Shown piece by piece: positions 1-14,811 of a stretch of DNA of 14,811 nucleotides. The translations under genes and the position numbers were made by a program. Where the stretch lies: contig NW_003314538.1 of assembly GCF_000143415.4 (NCBI RefSeq), positions 1-14,811 of the forward strand. The letters run 5' to 3'. The notes beneath the pieces were generated by a model. That model saw only the letters and a program-made list of their open reading frames with translations, ran no database searches and was not told the DNA's origin. Source of the stretch: Selaginella moellendorffii. Taxonomy: Eukaryota > Plantae > Lycopodiophyta. Numbering within the stretch: the first letter of the stretch is position 1; every line of letters begins with the position of its first letter.

Positions 1-302
1 ACCTTTAACATTGGGAGCTTCAATAATTTTCAGCTGGATCGAACCAACAAAGCAAGGTGGGAGATGTCTGAAGTTCTTAGAAAGATTGAAATTGTTGGCG
101 GAGGTGCAACTTAATGAAACGTACCACATGTTCTAATTGTCTTGCTCTCATTCGATGAGCAGACTAGTATGAAGAAAGGATGACAAAAACCTCCTGTTGT
201 TTACGAAGTTCTTGGAATTGTCATGTATGGCTCGCAAAAGCACAGAAAGCTTCAAGACTTGACCTTCCTGCTTGATTTCTTTAAAGCACCGCATGGCACA
301 GA

Positions 303-1390
303 CTACAAACAAAGATTTAAGACTGGTTTAAATTATGAAATCAAGATTTACCTTCAAAGTGCTTGCAAGAGCTACAATGCAGCCAACCACGGCCAACAGT
401 AACTGCTTCTTGTCCGAAATAGAAGTTTCAGAAATAAACCATGCTAGGATGTTCAGGCTATGTACTTGTACAGGCGTAGTGCTATCTGGTATTAGTGTTA
501 GTGACGACAAGTAAAACACTGAGCTTTCCAAAAGAAAAGAAACAGCATCGGGAGTATGCCCAAGGAGAATTAACAGTAAACTTCCCGGAAAGTTTTGCGA
601 AAATAAGATAAATACTATCACGAACCTGCAATAGAGAAGATTAGTATTTCTTCTCGATGGAATTTTATTATGTTGGAGTCCAAGAACGAGATGATCCTAC
701 ACAATACAAGAAGTTTCCCCAGACGTAGATACTGGTCAGCACCGAACTGAGATACATAATCAACCTAAATTATGCACAGATGAAAAAAAATTCAAGAGTA
801 TCAGTGTTAGTTGCGATTGCTGACACTCCTCACAAAGAAATGGAACGTATTTCTTTAATAACTGCTCTGGGTTTCCTAGCTGGTTAATTTCTTGCGTTGG
901 AAGTCACGAAGGCTCAACATTTTGGAGTTGTCAGATATCATAGCTGCTTCTAGCATTAAATCAGTTAGAATGTGATCCTGCACTGCAATTTATAGTTCAC
1001 GTCGGTATACCACACATCTTGAACAAAATAGCTCGGGAGATGCAACAGCGTGGTGTCCACGGCTGGCTTCTTGTAGGATCCATGCATCTCATCTCAAGTG
1101 GGCAGAGATCAAGTGGAAGCTGGAGAGCTATCCCAATTCTCGGGAGATGTGATGAAGAAAATGGTGGGATTGTTGATTTTTGTAGAGAGAATATCTGCAC
1201 CTTTGTGAAACGTTTTCCTACAGGCCTTTCGAATCCACGGAACCTGGAAGTCAAAACAAGAGAGAGTAGCTTCAGAACATTTAAAAGCTCACCCCTGCAA
1301 GTTCTGTTGTGGTACAGAGTGAATGAGTTTCTTTTTGCCTATGGGAACCTCAAAGCCAATGCCAAGTACCTTTTTTGACAACTCTGCAAA
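303..1390 (-). other. Possible spliced host transcript or gene remnant (product unidentified)
   Basis: The minus strand shows a CT-rich tract ending TTTTGCAG at ~1384, and two GT-AG candidates of 49 nt each: 1292-1244 (GTGAGC...TTGACTTCCAG) and 351-303 (GAAG|GTAAAT...TTTGTTTGTAG). There is another acceptor-like TATTGCAG at ~626. I could not assemble a recognisable protein. Confidence 0.3.
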
Positions 1391-1415
1391 ATCATAGAAA
1401 GAAAGAAACAAATGA

Positions 1416-1439
1416 AGAGAGAGAGAGAGAGAGAGAGAG
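1416..1439. repeat. (AG)12 microsatellite
   Basis: Perfect AG dinucleotide run of 24 nt, read directly. Confidence 0.97.
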
Positions 1440-1519
1440 GAATTGATCCATCAATTTTATCTGTCTAGGTTTCTAGTTTCTTCCATACCTTGAGGAACCA
1501 ATTGTTAAATTCCATTGAG

Positions 1520-1604
1520 TACTACTCCTCTTTTTAAATAATTTGTTGTGCTATTTAAAATATACTACTCCTCTTTTTAAATTTCTTTTGTGCTATCTAA
1601 AATA
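1520..1604. repeat. Two-copy imperfect tandem repeat, ~43-bp unit
   Basis: TACTACTCCTCTTTTTAAAT...TTGTGCTATYTAAAATA occurs at 1520-1562 and 1563-1604. Confidence 0.9.
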
Positions 1605-1614
1605 TATCACAATG

Positions 1615-1789
1615 TGTGAGGGCCAAGTGTACAGTTATGATGCCGTATACTAATATTAGCATAGTGGGATTTTGGTAGTCATCGGATTGGTTTTAATTTG
1701 GACCACTCGCTCCAGTATATAAGCTAGGGTTTTTGGGCTAATTGATATGCACATTTCTGTATTCCCTTTCCATATTCTAAGCACTCACA
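1615..1789 (+). repeat. 5' LTR of element A (175 bp)
   Basis: Begins TGTGAG (1615) and ends CTCACA (1789), a perfect 6-bp terminal inverted repeat with TG...CA. It contains TATATAA and is followed after 1 nt by a TGG-starting PBS. There is no second copy in the window to confirm the 5' boundary. Confidence 0.78.
1716..1722 (+). promoter_or_regulatory. Putative TATA box in LTR of element A
   Basis: TATATAA inside the predicted LTR, ~70 nt upstream of its 3' end. Confidence 0.6.
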
Positions 1790-1790
1790 T

Positions 1791-1810
1791 TGGTGGAGGT
1801 AAGGGGCATC
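1791..1810 (+). promoter_or_regulatory. Primer-binding site, probably tRNA-Ala
   Basis: TGGTGGAGGTAAGGGGCATC lies 1 nt after the LTR end. TGGTGGA is complementary to the ...UCCACCA 3' end typical of tRNA-Ala, and GGGGnATC matches the T-arm complement. tRNA identity is from recalled consensus, not a search. Confidence 0.75.
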
Positions 1811-1840
1811 TTTGATTGTCCCTAAGGAGTGCTTGGATTT

Positions 1841-1970
1841 GGGATTTTGGTTTAGATCTAGCTTTTGCATCGTCTAGATCTAGCTTTTTCCATTTCCTGT
1901 CTTTTGTTCTTTCTATTCAGGGTTTTGGTTTAGATTTAGCTTTTTGCGTTGTCTAGATCTACCATTTCCT
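1841..1970 (+). repeat. Imperfect direct duplication in the 5' leader of element A
   Basis: GGGATTTTGGTTTAGATCTAGCTTTTGCATCGTCTAGATCTA (from 1841) versus GGGTTTTGGTTTAGATTTAGCTTTTTGCGTTGTCTAGATCTA (from 1920), both followed by CCATTTCCT. Confidence 0.85.
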
Positions 1971-2022
1971 TCTAGCTTTTTGTCATTTCTCTTCTTTTGC
2001 TCTTTCTTTTTCGTTCATCTTC

Positions 2023-2955
2023 ATGGCAAATCAGCAATCTCCTCCTTTGACTCTAGAGCAGCAATTGGTACAATTGCTTGATGCTATGCGCTTGCAGTTG
2101 AACAACCAAACTCAGTTGATGGCGGCATTCACGGCACGTGGTACAACTCCTCCTGCTCTTGGTGCCAATCCTCGCGTTCGGCCGGAGTTCTTTTGCGGGA
2201 ATCCTGGGGATGATGTGTACCATTGGTTCGATCATTTCACGGTGATTGCCACATATCATTCTTGGGATGATGCTCGACGGTTGCGTGAGTTTCCCATGTG
2301 TCTCCAAGGGATGGCGTTGCAGTAGTACAATGGTTTGAGCACAGCCACTCGTGGGGATTGGAGTGTTCTCCTGGACGTCTTCAAACGCGCCTTCGGACAT
2401 GCCGATGATTGTGATGATACTTTCCAACAATTGCATTGTCTTCGCCAAGGGCCATCTGAGTCGGTGATGCAATTTGGCGTTCGTTTCCGAAGTCTTTTGC
2501 TTCATGCGGAGCCAAATATGTCGGAGCGGATCAAGCTAGGAATGTTGTGGCCAGCACTTTGTCAAGATCTTGTCGGCCTTATGCATGCACTTGCTCCTGC
2601 CACCCTTAACAATGCTCTTCACTTGGCACAACGTTATGAGATGTCGCCTCTTCCACTTCTCGCTGCACGTCCTTCCGCTCCACTTCCTATGAGTGATGGT
2701 CCTGTTCCAATGGAGGTTGATGCTGCTGCTGCTCGAGTCCAAGGACAAACGCGAGGACATGGTCGTGGCCGTGATGTTCGCTACTGGGTGTGTGATAAAG
2801 TTGGTCATACTTATCGGCATTGCCGTCGTTTTCCGGATTGGCGACCTCCATTTCCTAGGTGGAGACCTTGGCGTCAGCAACATCCCGTGGGTGCTGCTGC
2901 AGTGGAAGGTCTGGACACCGAGATGCATCCGGGAAACGAGGAGTCGCGCGAGTAA
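2023..2955 (+). pseudogene. gag: gag of element A (capsid plus degenerate CCHC zinc knuckle)
   Basis: ORFs 2023-2325 and 2335-2955 share a frame and are split by one TAG at 2323 in 'GMALQ*Y' (expected W). Motifs are PEFFCG, LRQGPSESV.QF..RF, PVPMEVD, and the knuckle Y-X2-C-X4-H-X4-C at 2782-2823 (first Cys TGC changed to TAC). Confidence 0.92.
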
Positions 2956-2992
2956 CGGAGGGACCTTGCGCAAATAAATCAGTGACCCCTCC
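2931..2992 (+). promoter_or_regulatory. -1 programmed ribosomal frameshift signal (G GGA AAC plus H-type pseudoknot)
   Basis: The heptamer at 2931-2937 is in X XXY YYZ phase with gag, and the -1 frame is the protease frame. After an 8-nt spacer, stem 1 is GCGCGAG (2946-2952)/CTTGCGC (2965-2971) and stem 2 is GGAGGG (2957-2962)/CCCTCC (2987-2992). Confidence 0.85.
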
Positions 2993-3400
2993 ATCTTTCT
3001 TTCGGGAGTACCATCAAGGGGTTCACTCGGCACCAGTTCATCCAGTATTTACTTTCCAAGTTCGTTTTTATAACCAGAGGTCTCCTATTATTCTCTCCGT
3101 GTTGGTTGATATAAGTTCAAGTTTATCTTCTATTGCTCGACCTGTTGCCACACGTTGTCGTCTACACTTGCGTCGTGTGGCGGAACCATTTTTCATTCTT
3201 TATGGCAACGGCTGTACACATGCATGTGCACAGGATGAGGTGGACCTAGTTGTGCGTGTGAGCGATCTTGAGCTTGAGTTGCAGTCGTTGCGAGTGGTGC
3301 CAAGTCAAGCTTTTGACCTCATTCTTGGTATGGATTGGTTGCAGCGCAATCATGCCAAGTGTGACTTTGAGGCTTCTCCCCTTGTCTTATACTTCTTTAT
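2931..3400 (+). pseudogene. pol: pol of element A: aspartic protease domain
   Basis: VLVDISSS (Asp codon 3108-3110, degenerate D-T/S-G) and FDLILGMDWL (ILGMDWL at 3321-3341) in ORF 2859-3557. It is followed by a CT-rich linker containing frameshifts. Confidence 0.85.
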
Positions 3401-3549
3401 GTTTCATCCATTCCTCTCACTTCCATACCTCTTCGTCCCTCTACTTCTACCTCTACTTCCATTACTTTTGTTCCCCCACTCTTTCCTTTTGTGTTTCCAT
3501 CTTGTTCTGCTTTTCCCTTTTCCGATCCCTCCGACGATCTTTTGTTGCA

Positions 3550-4538
3550 GCAGTTGACCGGCTCATGAAGGAGTATTCTGATCTATTTGAATTTGACCTA
3601 TCGTCTGGGGCCAAGATTGCCACATGTCATCCGATTCCAACTAGGGATGCTCGTCCAATCAAGGTTTCTGTTTGTCGTTGGTCACCTAAGGAGATCAAGA
3701 TTTTACGAGCAAACGTCAAGGAAATGCTAGAGAAAGGTGTTATTCGGAAGTCGCAGAGTCCTTGGGCGAACCTCATCTTGTGACGAAGCCTGATGGGAGT
3801 ATTCGTTTCTGCATCGACTATCGTCTGTTAAACGAAGTGACGATCCCAGATGTGTATCCTCTTCCTCATACTGCTGATCTCTTGGATCGTCTGGGGTGAA
3901 GTCGTTGGTTCACCAAGCTAGATCTTCCTTCTGGGTATTGGCAAGTACCAATGGCTGAAGAAGATATTCCTAAGATTGCTTTTCGTACACCATTTGGTTT
4001 GTATGAGTTCTTGGTGATGCCGTTTGGTTTGAACAATGCTCCAGCAACTTTCCTATGGATGATGGACGAGGTTCTTTGTGATATGCCGGAGGTGACTGCT
4101 GACTTCATTGATGATGTCTTGATCCACTCGGAGGGGACGTGGGAGGAGCACGTTCGTGATGTTTGTAAAGTGTTGGATCGGCTACACGACGTTGGTTTAA
4201 AGCTGAAGTGGTCAAAGTACGTGTTTGGGTCCAAGGACACAACTTATCTTGGGTACTGTATTTCTCGTGAGGGTTTGCAAGTTGATCCTGACAAAATTGT
4301 GGCTGTTCTAAAGTTCCCTACTCCGAAGTGTGTGAATGATGTGCAATGCTTTTTGGGTAAGGTGCAGTATCTTGGTCGTTTTGTGGATCATCTTTCCGAT
4401 CGCACTACACCATTGCGAGCGTTGCTGAAGTCATCCATATCATCTTTCATCTGGTCTTCAGATTGTGAGCGGGCGTTCGTGGATCTCAAAGAGCTATTGA
4501 CGACTCCTCCGGTTTTAGCGTATCCTGACTACACTTGA
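3550..4538 (+). pseudogene. pol: pol of element A: reverse transcriptase and connection
   Basis: [14 protein letters not shown], then a frameshift at ~3780, [54 protein letters not shown] (4104-4115), YLGY and LLTTPPVLAYPDY. TGA stops at 3897 and 4536. Confidence 0.96.
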
Positions 4539-4910
4539 CCTTTTATTTTGCACGTGGATGCTTCTGACATTGGTCTTGGAGGTGTGTTGATGCAAGAGAG
4601 CTCAAGTGTGCCTGGTCAGCGCCATCCCATTGCATACATAAGCTGTACATTACAACCAGCGGAGATGAACTACTCCACGACGGAGAAGGAGTGTTTAGCA
4701 GCAATCTGGGGTTTCGAGAAACTTCATGCATATCTACATGGTTCTCGGACGTTACTTGAAGGTGACCATGCTACTGTTACTTCATTATTGAAGCGGAAGA
4801 ACCTGGTTGGTCATACGGCTTGATGGGCTTTGAAGCTTCAGATATATAATTTTGATGTTGTTCATCGCCCAGGGAGTTCTATGGTTGATGCTAATGCCCT
4901 TTCTCGAGCT
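4539..4910 (+). pseudogene. pol: pol of element A: RNase H
   Basis: HVDASDIGLGGVLMQ, HPIAYIS, AEMNYSTTEKECLA, EGDH and *WALKLQIYNFDVVHRPG...DANALSR. One TGA at 4821. Confidence 0.95.
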
Positions 4911-5169
4911 CCTCTTCCTTCTCCACTCACTTCTCATGTTTCTGATGAACCTATTGTTCCAGCATCTGTGGATTTTCTAGATGAGGATTCTGTGCCGTCG
5001 GCGGTTACTGTCCTTGACGTTCAGTGTCCACAGGGCGCAGAGCAAGATCTACCTTATCTTGATGAGGTTTGCGAGGCTCAAAAGATTAAGCCGTGGATTC
5101 GAAGGCTTCGAGATGGGTTTGAAAATCCTGCATCACTTGCTGATGACTTGCCTTTCCGGCATTTACATT

Positions 5170-5976
5170 CTCAATATCGCCTTGAAGATGGCCTTCTTTA
5201 TTTTGTGGGGACGGATCCTGATGATCATTTACGGCTGGTGGTGCCTTCGGTGTTTATTCCGCGGTTTTGTCCATGCCTACCATGATTCTCCTGTTCTTGG
5301 TGGGCATATGGGACACCGTCGTGTCACCGAGAAGCTGCGCAGGTCTTTCTATTGGCCGGAGATGCGACATGATATTATCCGGTATGTGCGTAGCTACGTT
5401 TGGTGCCAAGCTCGTAATACTCCCCCTCGTGCTACAGAAGGATGGTTGGAGTCAATTGTGGTTTCCCGTCTGTTTGAGTTAGTGGCGTTTGATCTTATGG
5501 GACCTTTTCCATGGTCGACTGTTGGCAATGAGTATGTTATTATTGCTTCTGACTACTTGACTCATTGGGTGGAAGTTGGTGCTCTTGCTAGCGCCTCTAC
5601 AACTGCTATTGGATACTTCCTTCTCAATCGAGTGGTGTTCCAGCATTCTTGTCCAGAGTAGATTCTTTCAGATAATGGTCCCGCATTTATGGCTGAGATA
5701 TTTCATGTTTTGACATCTCGGTTGGGGATACGCCACACTCTTACGAGTGCTTATCATCCACAATCAGACGGTTTGGTGGAACGGCTTGTTCGGACATTCA
5801 AAGGGATGATTGCGAAGTATGTGAACTTTCAGCATTCGGATTGGGATGGTTATTTGCCGTCTCTTCGGTATGCATATGTTACAGGGGTGCAGAGTTCTGT
5901 TGGTGCTTCACCATATAAACTTCTATATGGTCATGATCCAATATTACCAACAGAGCTGGGTTTACCTTTTAAATAG
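5170..5976 (+). pseudogene. pol: pol of element A: integrase (zinc finger and DDE core, C-terminus missing)
   Basis: HDSPVLGGHMG...FYWPEM...SYVWCQ (HHCC with one C changed to Y), AFDLMGP, LSDNGPAF, TSAYHPQSDGLVER and SPYKLLYG. Frameshift at ~5265 and TAG at 5659. Confidence 0.95.
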
Positions 5977-7134
5977 CTAGAACAATATTTAACTCTCTTA
6001 AGTTCTTTCGTGTTTAACCACCAGGCCATCAATCTTAGACGGCTGGATTTTGTGCCCTCTATATTACAACTAGCCATTATGTAATCTTTTCAAGTTCATC
6101 ATTTCCAAGGGATCCAAGTGATTAACTATAATTGAAAAAAAATATATCAGAGACATATTTTCTTATAATTTAGAGAAAATTTATTTAATATTATTATCAT
6201 AAACTTATAGTACTGAAATTAGAATGCTACATCAGCTAGACCAAGAGACAGCTATATAATGAATAATGATGTAAGAAACATTAATTTTTAAGTTACTCTA
6301 ATATTAAGTTTACTTCCTTATTTATATTATATTACATCTAGATTAGAAAAAAAAATTATTAACTTACAAAAACTCCTTTAAATCAAGCATAACCTACAAT
6401 ATAAAGAAATTATGAAATATTTTAAATGGGTTTATACCCAGCATTGTTTATAGAAAAAGATGAATAATTAAATATCTTGCTTAATTTTGTATTGAAATGC
6501 ATTCAATATTATAATTTTAGTTGAAGACTTTAATATTTGTTGGGACACTCTCTAATATAAGTATGAAACTTTATCCCAAAAAACACAAAGTTTCAAACTC
6601 TTTTGTTTTTCCAAAGAAAATATCAAAAACTTTTACACATAGACGGTTTCCATACTAGGACATGATCAGGCCAAACATATCCAATAGTACCAGATCCAAC
6701 ACTTGGAATCCTCTGCAGGAAAAACACAATGTTGTGAGCAAGCAAGACAAGAATATGGGAATCATAAAGCCCGAGAATAGATTGAAGACCGATTAAAGTA
6801 AATAACATGATGAAGAAGCAAGAACTTTCACAATAACACAAGGTTACGCAGCAGTTTAGATAGTCTCTTTATAAATGATTTCACTTTTCTGAGCTAAGTG
6901 TACTTTTGAGGTAGAGAATTATGGCACAGCCAAGATGAGGGAGTACTAGGATATCCTTAAGGAAAGAAAGCACCGCTCACATCACTAATGCCTCCAACTT
7001 AAAAAGATAGTCCATACTCATATAATAGTGCTTTAGTCACCGGACTACGATCCTTCTTGGGCGTCGAGGGACAGGAGATGGGGAATGAAAAGAATGAGGA
7101 CTAAAATGAGAAGGATAGCGGCAGTGAAAGTCAT

Positions 7135-7270
7135 GAATAAGGTCAGGAGAATGAATTAAGTGGTCTGCAGGTTCCCAAGTGCATTCCTTAAGTTCGTAAC
7201 CCTTCTAATCTACCAGATAATAGAGTTTAGACCATGAGATTTTGGAATCAAGGATGTCCTGAACCTTGTA
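7135..7270 (-). pseudogene. Integrase C-terminal chromodomain of element B
   Basis: Manual translation gives YKVQDILDSKISWSKLYYLVD*KGYELKECTWEPADHLIHSPDLI, a canonical chromodomain pattern with the conserved Trp changed to TAG. It is reached by a frameshift at ~7295 after HPVFHSSLLEPY...PPPP and is absent from the ORF track. Confidence 0.92.
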
Positions 7271-7294
7271 CTTAGACCCATCTTCAAGCTGCAC

Positions 7295-8469
7295 TGGGGA
7301 GGTGGAGGAATGACCCGATTTGGAATAGGACTGGGAATGTAAGGCTCAAGGAGAGAGGAGTGAAAAACGGGGTGAATTTGATATGAGGAGGGAAGTGCAA
7401 GGCGATAAATGACAGGATTAATGATGGCAGTGATAAGGAAAGGACCAAGGCATTTGAAATTGAGTTTGGGACATAGCCTGGTGGTGGAGATATTCCACCT
7501 AAGGATATCCCCGATATTGTAAAAGGGACAATCCTGACGATGGACATTGGTGAGTGTTTTGTGAGATTCTTGAGCACGATGAAGGTGGAAGGAGATGGAG
7601 TTATGGATTTCCTAGAGGTTAGAGATAAATGCCTCAAAGTGGGGATTTGAACAAGAGGATTCGGATAGAGAAGGAAGTGAGAGATTAAATCAGGGATTTC
7701 AGCCAGAGTTTGTAAAGAAGGGGGAAACTTGAAGGGAGGAGTGAATGGAGTTGTTATAGGAGAACTCAGCAAGGGGAAGGATATTGAACCAGTCATTATG
7801 ATGATAGTTGATGAAACACCTCAGGAATTGTTCCAATGTCTAAATCGTTCGCTCAGACTGTCCATCAGTTTGAGGATGATATGCTGAAGAGAGGTTGGCC
7901 TTCACTCCAAGAAGCTGCAGGAACTGTTGCCAAAAATGAGAGATGAATTGAGGTCCTGGATCCGAAACTACATCTACAAGAATCCCATGAAGTCGGAAAA
8001 TTTCCTTGAATACCAGTTTTGCCATGTCCTTGCCTAAAAGCTCCTTGGTACACAGCAGGAAGTGTGCCATCTTTGTGAAGCGATCCACCACGACTAAAAT
8101 GTTGTTGAAGCTTCCAGAACTTGGAAGATCACTCAAGAAATCCATTGAGATGGATTCCCAAGGACCTGAAGGGACCAAGAAGGAATGAAGCAAACCTAAA
8201 GGAAAGTGGCAAGGTACCTTATTCCGGGCACAAGTGTCACAAGAAGTAACAAAAGCTTTGATGTAATTGTCCATGTGAGGCCACCAAAAGTCCCGTGCAA
8301 CCAGCTCATAGGTTTTCGCAATGCCAAAGTGACCAGCAGTTGGGCTATCATGGCATGCCATCAGGACCAACCTTCGAGCATCACCTTTAGCAATGTAAAT
8401 CTGCTCCCCACGGTACAACAAACCATCTAAAAACTCGAATTTGTCAAATCGCCGGCAATCGGGAGTCAT
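7295..8469 (-). pseudogene. pol: pol of element B: integrase (HHCC, DDE, GPF)
   Basis: CHDSPTAGHFG...FWWP...SCDTCARNK, ISMDFL, VVVDRFTKMAHF, VSDPGPQF and SSAYHPQTDGQSER. The same frame continues through stops as *TLEQFLRCF...DWFNILPLAEFSYNNSIH...KLNFKCLGPF...IHPVFHSSLLEPY. Confidence 0.96.
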
Positions 8470-8659
8470 TGGATGTCCAGCCTAAAGATGGGGGAAAATG
8501 TCACTGGCGAGGTCGTCAGATTGAAGATCATTTCTGATCACGTCCATCAAGGAGGAGTCCTGAGGGGCCAGGGAAATTGCCATAACTTGAAGAAGATCAG
8601 GACCAAGGATAACTTGATCCTGTTGATCGAAAGCAGGATTACCAGGCCTGAGACTGAGA

Positions 8660-8990
8660 TAGGAGTGCCTTGAAAGAGCATCAGGAAGGCCCTGAAGCTT
8701 TCTAGGTTTGTACTTGATAACAAATTCAAACTGACTCAGGAATTGTGCCCACCTTGCCTGACGACGGCTCAAAACTCGGGAAGTGGCAAAGTACTCCAGA
8801 TTTTTGTGATCCGTCTACACCATTGTTTGATGGCTCACCCCCTCCAAGAAATGATGCCACTTTCTAAAGGAATCCACAATGGCAAGGAGCTGATCTGCTC
8901 CGAGTTGAGACAGCATAGCACCGATGGCAAAGTCGGAGGCATCTGCCTTGATGAAGAAAGGTTGTGAGGGATCAGCGTGGATCAAGACGG
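8660..8990 (-). pseudogene. pol: pol of element B: RNase H (internally deleted)
   Basis: FFIKADASDFAIGAMLSQ, LLAIVDSFRKWHHFLEG, *TDHKNLEYF and RRQARWAQFLSQFEFVIKYKP...PDALSR. The usual P(V/I)A(F/Y)xS...NY...KE block is missing between 'GADQ' and 'LLAIV'. Confidence 0.93.
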
Positions 8991-10130
8991 GAGCAAAACT
9001 AAAGGCCACCTTGAGTGTGTTGAAGGCTTGCTGGGCAGCAGCAAACCAAAAGAAGGGAACATCCTTGCAAGTGAGATGCGTGAGAGGAAGGACAATGTCG
9101 GAGTAGTGATCAATGAATTTGCGGTAAAAATTGGTGAAGCCAAGAAAAACCTGAATGTCTGACATTGATTGTGGAGGCTCCCATTCGAGAATAGTCTTGA
9201 CTTTGGCAGGATCCATCGTGATACCCTCAGGAGTGATAATGTACCCAAGGAACTCCATAGACTCCTGATTGAAGGAACATTTCTCAAGCTTTGCATATAG
9301 GCTATGTTCCCGCTGCTTCACTAGCACCTTACACACATGCTCGTCGTGCTCCTCCTAAGTTTTTGAGTAGATGAGGATGTCGTCGAGGTAGACGATCACC
9401 ATCACATCAAGAAACTCCTGAAAAATGTCGTTTGCCATATGTTGGAAAACTGCTGGAGCATTTGTCAAGCCAAAGGGCATGACCGTGTACTCGAAGTGGC
9501 CATAGCGGGTTCAGAATGCAGTCTTCCATTCATCGCTAGGCCGGATTTGGATCAAGTTGTATGCTCCACAAAGGTGAATCTTGGTGAAGAAGTGCACACC
9601 ACCGAGGCGTTCCAAAGATAATGGTTCCGAATAGTCACCTTGTTCAAACCTCAGTAGTCAATGACTAACCGCAAACTCCCATGCTTCTTCTTGACAAAGA
9701 AGATAGGTGCTCCAGCCAGGGATTGCGAATGCTAAATGTACCCCGATGCAAGGTTCTTGTCCATGTACTCTTTGAGGGCTGTAAACTCCTAAGTTTGGAC
9801 TTCCGGGGAGGTCACTTAGCCCAGTACTATTCAAACCCAAGGACGCTTAACCCCAAATATCCCAAGACCCTTAACCGATTCGAGAAGGGGGTGCACTATT
9901 GTTCATGGGCCCTTTTCCTCTATATTTGAACCCTATAGACTATGTCTCGAATCGTTCCCTTTGGTTGCTTACAAAGGCCTTAGACTCGGACGGGGATAAT
10001 TTGTAGATAGGCCCCCACGAAGGTGATGCTCCTTCCTGTAAATCAATAGGACAGTCATAAGGCCGATGAACAGATAGTACACTAGCTTTTTTCTTGTCAA
10101 ACACATTCCCAAAATCATGATACTTCTCAG
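8990..10130 (-). pseudogene. pol: pol of element B: reverse transcriptase, interrupted by a solo LTR
   Basis: HRPYDCPIDL...GPIYKLSPSESKA, then the insertion, then LKEYMDKNL...[35 protein letters not shown]...[33 protein letters not shown] (9390-9379), KLEKCSF...EFLGY and FLGFTNFYRKFI. Confidence 0.96.
9780..9973. mobile_element. Solo LTR (194 bp) of an unrelated retrotransposon inserted in the RT of element B
   Basis: Termini TGTAA...TTACA (TG...CA, 5-bp inverted repeat) with flanks AGGGC (9775-9779) and AAGGC (9974-9978), a 5-bp TSD with one transition. Removing the insert and one TSD restores 'SESKALKEY'. No resemblance to the LTRs of A or B seen by eye. Confidence 0.88.
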
Positions 10131-10419
10131 AAAGACTGACAAGAGAAACATGCAAAGCAAAAAGAAAAATAGGTTTTTTATGAAGGAGTTCTTTCATTGT
10201 AATTGTGGAGATAGGAGGAGGCGTATGACTGAATGGAATGATGGGACAAGGATACTGTTCAATGTAAGATGGAAAAGAGGGAAAATAAGAGGGTGAAAAA
10301 TTTGTAGAGTTAGGAACAAAACCCCAATTTGAGTTTAGGGAACTTTTCCTGATTTGGACTTGATGAACAATAGGGGAAGACATGGGAGATGCTGATGTGG
10401 GAGAAACGAGCTGTAATTC

Positions 10420-10875
10420 CTTCCAATAGATCTGAGGCTGGTGCAGTTGGAACCAAGGAAGGCCGAGCACCACAGAGGAAGACTTGTTGTTAATGATGTT
10501 GAAGGCGATATCAGTGACGGTGGACCCAATATGTACTCAAACGGGCAATGTTTCCCTAAGTCCAAAAGATGGAGACACAAATTGCTTGCCAATGCCTTCA
10601 ACCCTCATATCCCGTATGGTAGGAGAAAGAGGAACATAATGTCGGGCAGCAAAGTCCGTGTCTATGAAGCAAGAAGTTACACTCAAGTCCAGTAGCACCA
10701 GAGCCTTGAGTCTTGATTGTTCGGTGAAAGAAAGGAGACATAGGATGCGAAAGTTGTGGGAATTGGTGGTGGCTTTGATGAAAGGTGGTGAGGAGTTTGA
10801 TAAAGAAGAAAAGTTATTTTTATTCGGGGAGTTCAAATAGACAGCTCCTACTTTGTTTGGACAAGGTCGTTTCCT
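10420..10875 (-). pseudogene. pol: pol of element B: aspartic protease
   Basis: ALVLLDLSVTSCFID (degenerate LLDSGA.SCFID) and VVLGLPWFQLHQPQIYW. ORFs 10537-10923 and 9940-10473 are in one frame separated by a TGA. Confidence 0.88.
10831..10875 (-). promoter_or_regulatory. Decayed -1 frameshift site of element B (A GGA AAC plus imperfect stem)
   Basis: The gag frame reads TCA GGA AAC GAC CTT GTC CAA ACA AAG TAG, and the -1 frame (AGG AAA CGA) is the protease frame. After a 6-nt spacer, GTCCAAACA/TATTTGAAC pairs at 7 of 9 positions. Confidence 0.6.
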
Positions 10876-11669
10876 GACTGCAATAGAGGTGGACCTTAAG
10901 GCAGAGTGAACTCGAGCAATCAAGGAGGCTTCTTAGGACACACAGCTGCTTAGTGATTAGGATCGGCACAGTAGAGGCAAAGATTCTAAGATACTCGACT
11001 TTGCTTCTCAGTAGGACTTAGCTTCCCTCTGATGAGTCGGGGAGTGCCAGAAATATCCATTAGGACTGGAGTAGTAGGTTCAAGAGTATGCCCCAAAGAC
11101 TCAAGTTGGGATTCCTGAGTCTGGGACGGGAAAATGGTGGTGTGGTGACTTTCCTAACAACGTTCAAAGAAACGATTATCACATCAAATAGCTTTGTTGA
11201 TGGCGTCCGACAGGTCTGTGGGATCCTCCATGGTGAGCAACAAATCCTTGACACTGTTGTTGAGGCCAAAACGAAATTGATCAATCAAGGCCCGCTCATC
11301 CCATTGAGTATCCAAGGCAAGGAGTTGGAACTCTGTAGCATAGATTGAGGCAAGATGAGACCCCTGAAAGAGACATCTCATCTTTGTGGTGGCAGCCCAA
11401 ACCCAATCTATCTCACCAAAACATGCTTCAAGATCCTCTTTGAACAACTGAAGATCCATCAGCTCCAGAACCATGACCCCTTTCATGCTCTTCTCCAGGA
11501 GAGGAGAAAACCATGACAAAGCTGCACCTTTGACCAATGTCCCGATCGTGCCGATTTGAGACTCGAGAGTGGGGTACCACCGATGTTGAAGTGCAAAGAT
11601 CAGCTCCATCTGGTTCAGGAATCTGCGAAGCTCCAAATGCTTGCTTGAGAACATCACCGGGAAACTCAT
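10848..11669 (-). pseudogene. gag: gag of element B (capsid plus CCHC knuckle)
   Basis: FLNQMELIF...GAALSWF...LFQG...YATEF...WDERALIDQFRFGL..SVKDLL...AI*CDNR. The same frame continues through stops to PVLMDIS and NLCLYCADPNH*AAVCP (C-X2-C-X4-H-X4-C, 10979-10938), ending ...SGNDLVQTK*. The N-terminus may be shortened. Confidence 0.92.
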
Positions 11670-11694
11670 CTTGAGCTAAAACAAAAGCAGAAAG

Positions 11695-11711
11695 CACAAT
11701 TTGAATCAAAC
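11695..11711 (-). promoter_or_regulatory. Non-tRNA (self-priming) primer-binding site of element B
   Basis: Directly after the LTR the minus strand reads GTTTGATTCAAATTGTG, with no TGG. It is complementary at 14 of 15 positions to CACAATATGAATCAA (11815-11801) inside the LTR, ~30 nt downstream of the TATA box. Confidence 0.82.
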
Positions 11712-11837
11712 TGTCAAGACCCCCAATAAGATCAGGACTGGAAAATGCAAAAGACAAAGAGAAAAGCTAGTGGAGATGAAGAAAAGGCCTTAGACTAGTG
11801 TTGATTCATATTGTGAAGAAATGGAACAAGGCTAACC

Positions 11838-11845
11838 TATATATA
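11838..11845 (-). promoter_or_regulatory. Putative TATA box in LTR of element B
   Basis: TATATATA(GG) on the minus strand, ~30 nt upstream of the segment that pairs with the PBS. Confidence 0.7.
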
Positions 11846-11925
11846 CTATAGGTTGATGAAGCTTCAACACTTTTGGATCGAGGACAGTCTAAATATAACT
11901 GAGGTCGAGGAGGTGCCACATCATC

Positions 11926-12082
11926 ATCAGCAATGTGGTCCGAGAATCAGGAATCATACAGGAAATCAAAGAGTCAGGAATAGGGAAGTGTCTTAAGAGT
12001 CAGGAATGTGGTCGTGTCTTGAGAGTCAGGAATGTGGTCTGTGGGTCAGGAATTTGGCGAGAGTCAAGAATGTGGCAAGAAT
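11926..12082. repeat. Degenerate GAGTCAGGAAT(GTGG) motif array in U3 of element B LTR
   Basis: Roughly 7-9 variably spaced copies of a (GAG)TCAGGAAT(GTGGTC)-like motif, read directly. Confidence 0.85.
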
Positions 12083-12097
12083 TGGGGGTTCCTAACA

Positions 12098-13620
12098 AAT
12101 TCCTTAACAAGGGCTCCAATACTTGCCCAACCAAACTGGGACAAAGACTTCAATACACATTGACACCTTTGATTATGCCATCAGAGCAATACTTTCTCAA
12201 CAACAATAAGACCTCAAAGACCGACCAATTTATTATGCGAGCTGAAGACTCAACTCAGCTGAGATGAACTACACCACCACTAAAAAAGAAGTTTTAGCAA
12301 TGGTCTATGCACTATAAAAGTTTTGACACTACCTACTCGGCACCAAAGTCAAGATCATTGTTAACTACAAAGCACTTTTACATCTCCTCAACAAGACCAT
12401 CTTCACCAGTAGAATTGCCTAATGGTTCTTATTACTTCAAGAATACAACTTCAAGATTATTCACAAACCTGGCAAACAACATGTATAAACCAACCACCTT
12501 AGCTACATTACAACTAGTGAACAACTAAAATATAATATGGACGACTTTCCTAACTCCAACATACTTTGCATCCACACATCATCAACATGGACGAATGACA
12601 TCTACTACTACCTAATAACAACAATAATTCCAAATCAATACTCCATCTCTAATCACCGTAAACAATTTGCCTTGAGGTATTCAGTCATGGGAGGAAGATT
12701 GTACAAAAAAGGACGAGACAATGTGCTACGAAGATGTGTACAACTTGAAGAACTCAAGATCTACTTGGAGAAGCCCACTATGGACAAGCAAGAGGCCACT
12801 TCACAAAAGAAATCACAGCTCACAAGATTTTGCAAGTAGGACTCTGGTGGCTAACACTTTGGCATAATTTAGTAAAATTTTGTCAAGAATGCAACATTTG
12901 TCAACAAACCAAGTACACATCAAAGAAACAAATTTAAGAGCTTCATCTAACAACACCACTGGAACCATTTTAACGATAAGGACTCGACTTCTTTGGACTA
13001 CTCATAACAAGCTTCAAGAGAAACAAGCATAAGGTTTTAACACCATACTACCCTCAAGGCAACGGTTAAACAGAGTTGACAAACAAGACACTTAAGAACA
13101 TCCTCAAGAAAATCATAAAAACAAATTAGAAAGATTGGGACAATCATATTTACAATACCTTATGGGTATATTGAACAACATACAAGGTTTCAACAAATTC
13201 GACATTATTCAAGCTTGTTTATGACTTAGAAGCCCTAACACCACTCAAGTACATCGTCCTTCATTGTGAATGGCAATACACTACGAGATCAACCAAGAAG
13301 AATCAATTAAAAAAAAACTAGTCGATAAAGAAAAACTATAAGCAATTTAGACACTCGAAGCCATTTAAGCTTGAAGAAAATCCAACCATGACTAAAAGAG
13401 AAAATTAAAGAAAAATAAAGAATTCAAGATCAATGATCAAGTACTTTGGTTTCTAAAAAACATTGAGAAAATCGGCTCGAAAGTGAAGTCAAGATGAGAA
13501 GGACCATTCCTCATTAAAAAATTCAAAGCTCCAGGAATGGGAACAATTGCAACATTCGATGGCAAACATCTCCAAACCATCAACCTTAACAAGCTTAAGA
13601 AATACCAATCATACGACTCA
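12098..13620 (+). mobile_element. pol: Element C: heavily decayed non-chromovirus Ty3/Gypsy remnant (RNase H plus integrase; Athila-like)
   Basis: Manual translation across stops and frameshifts gives LTRAPILAQPNWDKDF, IDTFDYAIRAILSQ, PIYYAS*RLNSAEMNYTTTKKEVLAMVYAL*KF*HYLLG, WFLLLQEYNFKIIHKPG, DDFP...WTNDIYYYL, LYKKGRDNVLRRCV, AH...GHF...TAHKILQVGLWW...CNICQ, TPYYPQGNG*TELTNKTLKNIL, DWD...LWVY*TTYK, EGPF and INLNKLKKY. Confidence 0.9.
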
Positions 13621-14070
13621 AACATCATCAACAACAATCTTAAAAGAAATGAAGGTTTCAATTTTAAAGATCAAGAATGAAATATCAAGAAGAACTACAG
13701 GCATGAAGATCAAAAGATCAAGACTATGAAAACTCAAACTCAAAATTTCAACACATTTAAGATTTACAAAGTTCAAGCTCAAGAACTCAACACAATAAAA
13801 AAACACAAAGCTCAAATTCAAAAATCCAACACAAGAAAAACTCTGAAAAATCAAGCTCAAGAAAACAACATGAAGAAAAATAATAATTTGAAGAACTTTG
13901 ACCCAAAACAAGATTTAGATACTAACAAATGTCATAAGACTCATTAACAAACATGCCAAAGACCAACATAAAGCAAGCTTCTCCAACACTACCACACCAA
14001 CAAAGAAAAAACTCAAGAAAGTTACCACAAGGACTCAAACTTGACACTCCATTGCAAAGAGCAAAATCCT
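13620..14070 (+). repeat. A-rich low-complexity tract with recurring CTCAA(G/A)AA motifs, probably the 3' region of element C
   Basis: The strong A/C skew continues from element C, with repeated AAGCTCAAGAA, AAAGCTCAAA and ACTCAAGAA words. No PPT or LTR identified. Confidence 0.5.
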
Positions 14071-14811
14071 AACTCTAGAGATATGTCCTAGAGGACAGTA
14101 TGTGCGGAAACACAATGCATCAATGACCAGCTCGCTAAAAAAAGTGCAAAGCTTCGTAGTTGACGATCATGACTCATGAAGAAGTGGCAGTTGCCACCAT
14201 GTAAGAGTAATTAAAGGGGAGAGTTAGCACTTCTCTATTGTATTCCAACTTATGACCAATGCACATTCATTTTCTCACGACTTGGAGTATTCTAGTAATA
14301 TCAAGCCTATCCTTACTCACAACCATTTGCATGAGCCTTCTTGAGCATTGAAGATCTCAAGTTAGTTTTTAATTGATTCCTGTGTTTGGTAGCTTGTTCT
14401 AGGGCGAGAATTACTGTACCAACACAAGATCAATGACATCAAAAGCCCTTTGTCATTTTGCAACTACAACAGCAGACTAGCGCAATTAGTCGCAATCGCA
14501 ATCCAAACTACACCAAAGAACTTCATCAAGTTTTCACCTAAGAATTATAGATCCAAGCAATATCACAAAGGCTATATGATATAACTAGACTTACAGCTGA
14601 GATATGACTCTTACCCTTGAGGATTGCTTTCTTTGGTTTTTGAACACTCTTCCTTTAAAGTATTCTATTGTGGTTACTAATCTTATGATGAATGATCATT
14701 ATAATTTTAAGATTGCTCTTACTGCAATTTGTGATTAGAATTGTTGTTCAATATGCTTCCCCCGACACTTTACTCTCAGTCACCACTTAATGAAAGGGTA
14801 TTTTCATCTTC

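Follow-up and report, generated by a model that had tools for sequence, protein, structure and literature searches.

A candidate -1 frameshift signal preserved at the gag-pol junction of a decayed, Selgy-like Ty3/gypsy retrotransposon of Selaginella moellendorffii

The window, by which we mean the whole stretch of DNA analysed here, comprises 14,811 nucleotides of the spikemoss Selaginella moellendorffii (assembly GCF_000143415.4, contig NW_003314538.1, positions 1 to 14,811 of the forward strand). Its plus strand carries the remains of a Ty3/gypsy retrotransposon. A PBS-like sequence, TGGTGGAGGTAAGGGG, is located at 1791..1806, one base past an LTR-like end ...CA at 1788-1789, and the leader between the PBS and the start of gag contains a 78-nt tandem duplication (1842-1994, 77% identity). 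The gag region (2023..2955) is decayed and survives as two ORF pieces that share a frame (2023-2325 and 2335-2955); it retains a Pfam match to Retrotrans_gag (E = 6.2e-5), is interrupted by an in-frame stop at 2323-2325, and encodes a CCHC knuckle that in translation is without its first Cys. Downstream, the -1 frame, in which pol would start by the predicted frameshift, is open at 2859..3557 and holds the protease (about 3090-3374), whose DSG now reads DIS through decay; beyond about 3420 this frame is lost again. Further along the plus strand, Pfam recognizes what is left of RT (3951-4535), RNase H (4548-4823) and integrase (4981-5661 and 5689-5976), in mixed frames. Neither an LTR pair nor a 3' LTR of the element was found in the window, and the ORF pieces of the window gave no Pfam match to a chromodomain or a second RNase H, the integrase tail being decayed there. 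The copy is a fossil: its genes are dead, and the signal at its gag-pol junction is locally intact.

The window also holds a second, different Ty3/gypsy element on the minus strand (7284-11700), with integrase at 7840-8466, RNase H at 8815-9333 and gag at 11184-11666. The sole GGGAAAC of this second element (minus strand, 10550-10556) lies in its protease region, just upstream of an LGLPWF motif, and was rejected as a junction signal.

The junction of the plus-strand element contains a candidate cassette for -1 frameshifting. The codons set by the gag ORF 2335..2955 place GGA at 2932-2934 and AAC at 2935-2937, so that the slippery heptamer at 2931-2937 is phased G GGA AAC in the zero (gag) frame, as read from the sequence, the ORF list and the translation; few heptamers make eukaryotic ribosomes shift as readily as G GGA AAC. 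A spacer of 8 nt (2938-2945) leads to stem 1, in which 2946-2952 pairs with 2965-2971 over 7 bp with a single G-U (2950/2967). The span of stem 1 (2946-2971) encloses a 4-nt loop 1 (2953-2956) containing the gag stop TAA (2953-2955), the 5' arm of stem 2, and a 2-nt inter-stem junction (2963-2964). Stem 2 consists of six Watson-Crick pairs between GGAGGG (2957-2962) and CCCTCC (2987-2992), and loop 3 (2972-2986) is 15 nt long, with A at 8 of the 15 positions. Loops of 4, 2 and 15 nt permit an H-type pseudoknot. The gag stop falls within the open -1 frame, and the resulting overlap spans the heptamer. An earlier note, made from the sequence alone, had described this heptamer, its phase, the spacer, both stems, the stop in loop 1 and the A-rich loop, and each of its coordinates matches the sequence; its placement of the protease in the -1 frame is likewise supported, by an RVP_2 match (Pfam, E = 1.4e-7, residues 78-172). 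The candidate cassette combines what is expected of a -1 signal, namely an in-phase X XXY YYZ heptamer, an open -1 overlap, and a predicted structure 5-9 nt downstream.

Relatives of the element were sought through its gag. A word search with the window gag piece gave no match; an exhaustive HMMER search with the window gag returned 31 matches, nearly all of them short proteins (84-350 aa), and those that cover the region end shortly past the zinc knuckle. Stand-alone gag proteins 280-350 aa in length are relatives of the window gag (best E = 3.8e-15); every named one comes from a fern, namely Ceratopteris richardii, Adiantum nelumboides or A. capillus-veneris. Scanning a metagenome collection with an alignment of the nearest gag group (fern gags) yielded 75 ENA SPAdes contigs (ERZ), which are probably fern DNA, as judged from the named protein relatives, all of which are fern. 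The comparative support thus comes from distant fern-like relatives rather than from same-family copies in the S. moellendorffii genome: gag is about 30% identical between the window and these relatives, and the window RT is 38% identical to the pol of one related locus, L032. At such distances the cassette belongs to a broad lineage and not to one family.

The frame relation of the window recurs among the related loci. Pol lies in the -1 frame at 43 of 52 junctions. An in-phase heptamer, or a one-base variant of it, is present at 61 of 71 gag ends, and it precedes the gag stop by 0-18 nt; the counts are 39 for GGGAAAC, 16 for GGAAAAC and 3 for GGGAAAT. Fifteen copies have an open pol frame of at least 2.9 kb starting at the heptamer. 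Gag and pol overlap by 16 nt in L002, L047 and L048, and by 13 nt in L030, L032 and L034 (heptamers at 1924, 1895 and 3290, respectively). In the latter three loci, which have an intact gag and a 3.2-kb pol frame, the gag stop follows the heptamer without a gap (G GGA AAC TGA), and the pol frame opens at a -1-frame stop 6 nt before the heptamer; with an overlap of 13 nt, a shift is possible only at the heptamer or at the two codons before it. The gag of L032 is 337 aa long and its 1051-aa pol contains protease, RT, RNase H and integrase; this intact pol gave no Pfam match to a chromodomain or a second RNase H.

Two observations concern the variety among these relatives. In L015, L016, L023, L006, L007, L024 and L047, G GAA AAC replaces G GGA AAC; fern-like subfamilies with this heptamer are abundant (contig coverage up to about 80x) and have a pol frame of 3.2-3.5 kb. 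G GAA AAC is a natural non-canonical heptamer, in which the P-site GAA would re-pair with GGA via G-U after a shift. A more distant, GC-rich gag relative (P0040, P0027) is encoded as a single gag-pol ORF of 1436 aa, which means that frameshifting is not used by all relatives of the gag family.

The earlier note had proposed that other copies be aligned and inspected for conservation of the heptamer and for compensatory changes, and its reading was borne out in 43 distinct cassettes from distant fern-like loci, in which the heptamer is conserved and the stems change in a compensatory manner. Together with the window cassette these form a gap-free alignment of 78 columns, in which heptamer positions G1, A4, A5 and A6 are invariant across all 44 cassettes. 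Stem 1 of the relatives occupies matching columns with a different sequence and compensatory changes (pair 22-36, for example, occurs as GC, UA and CG), and the purine arm of stem 2 falls in identical alignment columns in the window and its relatives; stem 2 of the relatives reads GGAAGAG/CTCTTCC or GGAGGAG/CTCCTCC. The stems of the window thus differ in sequence from those of the relatives at corresponding positions, which is what an inherited element under structural constraint would be expected to show. Changes on both sides of a pair are found in 62-64 cells, versus about 28 in shuffles, and none of 500 shuffles reaches the observed number. Counted on the stated structure, about 70% of stem 1 cells are paired.

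The geometry of the structure varies among subfamilies. In nearly all related loci stem 1 begins some 5-10 nt past the heptamer (in a perfect-stem scan allowing spacers of 4-10 nt), and loop 3 is mostly 13-22 nt long, reaching 25-27 nt in one subfamily. The cleanest examples, L012 and L047, have a stem 1 of 9 bp, a loop 1 of 2 nt, a stem 2 of 7 bp, no junction base, and a loop 3 of 17 nt. The idea of one common stem 1 register was rejected, as the subfamilies require both a bulged and an unbulged one, and as a consequence no single consensus structure fits all rows of the alignment.

The recurrence in distant relatives of the frame relation, the heptamer, and a pseudoknot with covariation points to an ancient, inherited -1 signal. 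We hypothesize that the window signal is the programmed -1 frameshift signal used by a Selgy-like Ty3/gypsy lineage of the non-chromovirus type, found in spikemosses and ferns, and that it has been kept in a dead copy; we consider this reading very probable. Most ribosomes on the genomic RNA of a live copy would terminate at the gag stop, which lies a few codons beyond the heptamer. With GGA in the P site and AAC in the A site, a smaller share would run into the H-type pseudoknot at the entrance of the mRNA channel, move back by one base onto GGG AAA, and continue in the pol frame; for the window copy the predicted product is a Gag-Pol running ...HPGN and then RGVARV.... The frameshift would in this way set the excess of Gag over Pol, as it does in retroviruses. 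It is plausible that the window cassette could still work.

The alternative that survives best, improbable as we consider it, grants a true -1 site and holds that its stimulator is only the stem 1 hairpin or some other element, stem 2 having been kept for another reason such as coding for the N-terminus of pol. Simple hairpins do suffice to stimulate frameshifting in some systems, the purine and pyrimidine runs of stem 2 could reflect coding or composition, and several of its pairs (28-65 and 31-62) hardly vary. However, stem 2 has changed on both sides at pairs 27-66 (GC, AU) and 30-63 (AU, GC), and 85% of its cells are paired, versus no more than 56% over the whole structure once the pairing partners have been displaced by 1-3 columns as a control. 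In addition, the 3' arm in one subfamily (L015, L024 and L028) lies about 9 nt further downstream and still matches its own 5' arm, and both arms of stem 2 in the window depart from the fern consensus at matching positions. We infer that ribosomes shift at the heptamer and that a pseudoknot, rather than a simple hairpin, is the stimulator.

A chance look-alike, in which an indel shifted pol and a heptamer and stems happened to lie near the break, is very improbable. Such an accident might be suspected in a copy as heavily decayed as this one, where gag, protease, RT and integrase are marred by stops and frame breaks, and the nested folding of the window signal is indeed unremarkable (MFE -17.6 kcal/mol, z = -1.24); a competing nested fold has the 3' arm of stem 2 paired to the spacer instead. 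In the usual model of -1 frameshifting, the spacer is inside the ribosome while the heptamer is decoded. We scanned for H-type pseudoknots with perfect stems, a spacer of 5-9 nt and limits on loop length, scoring each as a plain sum of stacking energies without loop penalties, and on this scale the window pseudoknot is the top score on the whole plus strand, equalled elsewhere only by its own reverse complement and by one low-complexity site on the minus strand (about 14520). A pseudoknot-like match at about 11118 was rejected, as it is without a heptamer. When the local 75 nt were shuffled with dinucleotides preserved, the score of the window pseudoknot was reached in only 4 of 3000 cases, so that the pseudoknot is better than chance would give. 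The related loci largely refute an accidental origin, in that the frame relation, the position of the heptamer and the pseudoknot recur where gag is intact, pol is 3.2 kb long and the overlap is as short as 13 nt, and in that the window aligns to their cassettes without a gap.

Least probable of all is that pol is reached by a spliced or subgenomic RNA, internal initiation or transcriptional slippage, the heptamer being incidental: the plant elements Ogre, BARE1 and EVD do use splicing rather than recoding, but the pol frame of the intact relatives opens only 6 nt before the heptamer with no start codon nearby, the first in-frame GTG lies past the gag stop with the protease beginning right after, the heptamer is the most conserved block within a variable gag tail, and GGGAAAC is no homopolymer run of the kind associated with transcriptional slippage.

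The assignment of the signal to a Selgy-like lineage is based on the features of the element. Supplementary file 5 of Neumann et al. (2019, Mob DNA 10:1) describes Selgy as a non-chromovirus clade of S. moellendorffii, about 5 kb long and with a tRNA-Ala PBS, and gives its prevailing organization as 'GAG:o:PROT-RT-RH-INT', that is, gag and pol in different, overlapping frames; the same file lists an overlapping gag/pol organization for Tcn1, a chromovirus clade of mosses and lycophytes. The window element is likewise from a spikemoss, short and probably non-chromovirus, its coding sequence fills the internal region, and its gag and pol lie in overlapping frames. Its PBS is of the TGGTGGAG... 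type, which Neumann et al. (2019) assign to tRNA-Ala; the first 8-10 nt of TGGTGGAGGTAAGGGG fit a 3' end of the form ...CTCCACCA, the comparison being with that end and not with the tRNA-Ala sequence itself. Thirteen fern-like loci carry TGGTGGAGAT, in at least five of them after ...CA T and at a distance of 77-193 nt before the gag match begins (five positions checked), so that the window and the fern-like loci have in common a nearly identical PBS-like motif following the LTR end. On the features compared the element appears to agree with Selgy and fits a Selgy-like placement, made by features rather than by RT phylogeny. A difference lies in distribution: Selgy is called S. moellendorffii-specific by Neumann et al. 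(2019), whereas a related lineage sharing the PBS and the cassette is abundant in fern-like contigs.

In form, the window signal resembles those of betaretroviruses (SRV-1, MPMV and JSRV) and several lentiviruses, where GGGAAAC, a spacer of 6-7 nt and an H-type pseudoknot of about 6 + 6 bp are standard at gag-pro. The window differs from the betaretrovirus signals in its spacer (8 nt) and stems (7 + 6 bp), and from SRV-1 in having 4 nt in loop 1 and 2 nt between the stems as against 1 and 0, while the fern relatives have a longer stem 1 of 9-10 bp that is often bulged. The host also differs, being that of a plant retrotransposon, and the likeness shown is one of form. The earlier note had pointed to the mammalian gene PEG10/Edr, which shares G GGA AAC and a pseudoknot at a gag-pol junction derived from Ty3/gypsy. 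That parallel holds for the heptamer and pseudoknot but is one of analogy only. Betaretroviruses and lentiviruses, too, routinely combine this heptamer with a small pseudoknot. PEG10 belongs to the Tf1/Sushi chromovirus group, and membership of the window element in that group was rejected: it has no chromodomain match and its PBS is tRNA-type. What the window signal shares with PEG10 goes no further than the heptamer and the type of stimulator. On plant ribosomes, pseudoknot-stimulated -1 frameshifting also occurs at the P1-P2 junction of poleroviruses and enamoviruses (BWYV, PLRV and PEMV-1). BWYV and PEMV-1 also use G GGA AAC. These are RNA viruses with very compact pseudoknots (stems of about 3-5 bp, with base triples); the stems of the window signal are longer, and its loop 3 measures 15 nt.

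The usual account of plant LTR retrotransposons is that Gag and Pol come from one ORF, by way of a stop codon, or through splicing. A survey of these elements (Gao et al. 2003, as summarized in a 2016 review of recoding) recorded no more than two element types with separate frames, and in each of them pol is in the +1 frame. The contrast that the earlier note drew with seed-plant elements is less striking than it suggested, the host here being a spikemoss. Its description of an intact pseudoknot signal amid dead ORFs is upheld by the anatomy of the junction and by the frame, heptamer and covariation of the relatives, while its suggestion that the signal was possibly uncharacterized is only half right: the overlapping frames had already been tabulated for Selgy and Tcn1 by Neumann et al. 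(2019), and a description of the signal itself was not found. In the main text and supplements searched of that paper 'frameshift' refers to mutations only, and no recoding signal is named; a wider literature search, with most subscription journals outside it, found no description of a -1 signal in an LTR element of a plant, fern or lycophyte. The frame overlap was previously catalogued, and what is new here is that the signal, itself of a well-known kind, is spelled out.

A broader proposal, for which we see the case as evenly balanced, is that G GGA AAC with an H-type pseudoknot is the ancestral, selected gag-pol device of a lycophyte and fern Ty3/gypsy lineage, hundreds of millions of years old; that no -1 signal had been explicitly defined before it in plant LTR retrotransposons, for which reviews give only +1-frame or single-ORF arrangements; and that the G GAA AAC variant serves the abundant fern subfamilies with a pol of 3.2-3.5 kb. 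To the entry of 'overlapping frames' for Selgy, the present analysis adds a precise candidate shift site and a stimulator structure supported by covariation, as well as a device common to a spikemoss element and abundant fern elements. For annotators of transposable elements this supplies a rule for joining gag and pol in Selgy-like lineages, and a natural cassette of about 60 nt, with its stem variants and G GAA AAC, could serve the study and engineering of -1 frameshifting on plant ribosomes.

Two minor features lie towards the end of the window. A 60-nt stretch of the plus strand (12240-12299) matches the RNase H region at 4641-4700 with 72% identity and is probably a fragment of a third retroelement; the neighbouring ORFs (11935-12839, plus strand) gave no Pfam match. 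Further downstream, 13729-13880 is an A-rich tandem repeat with a period of 39 nt, in about three overlapping copies of 73% identity.
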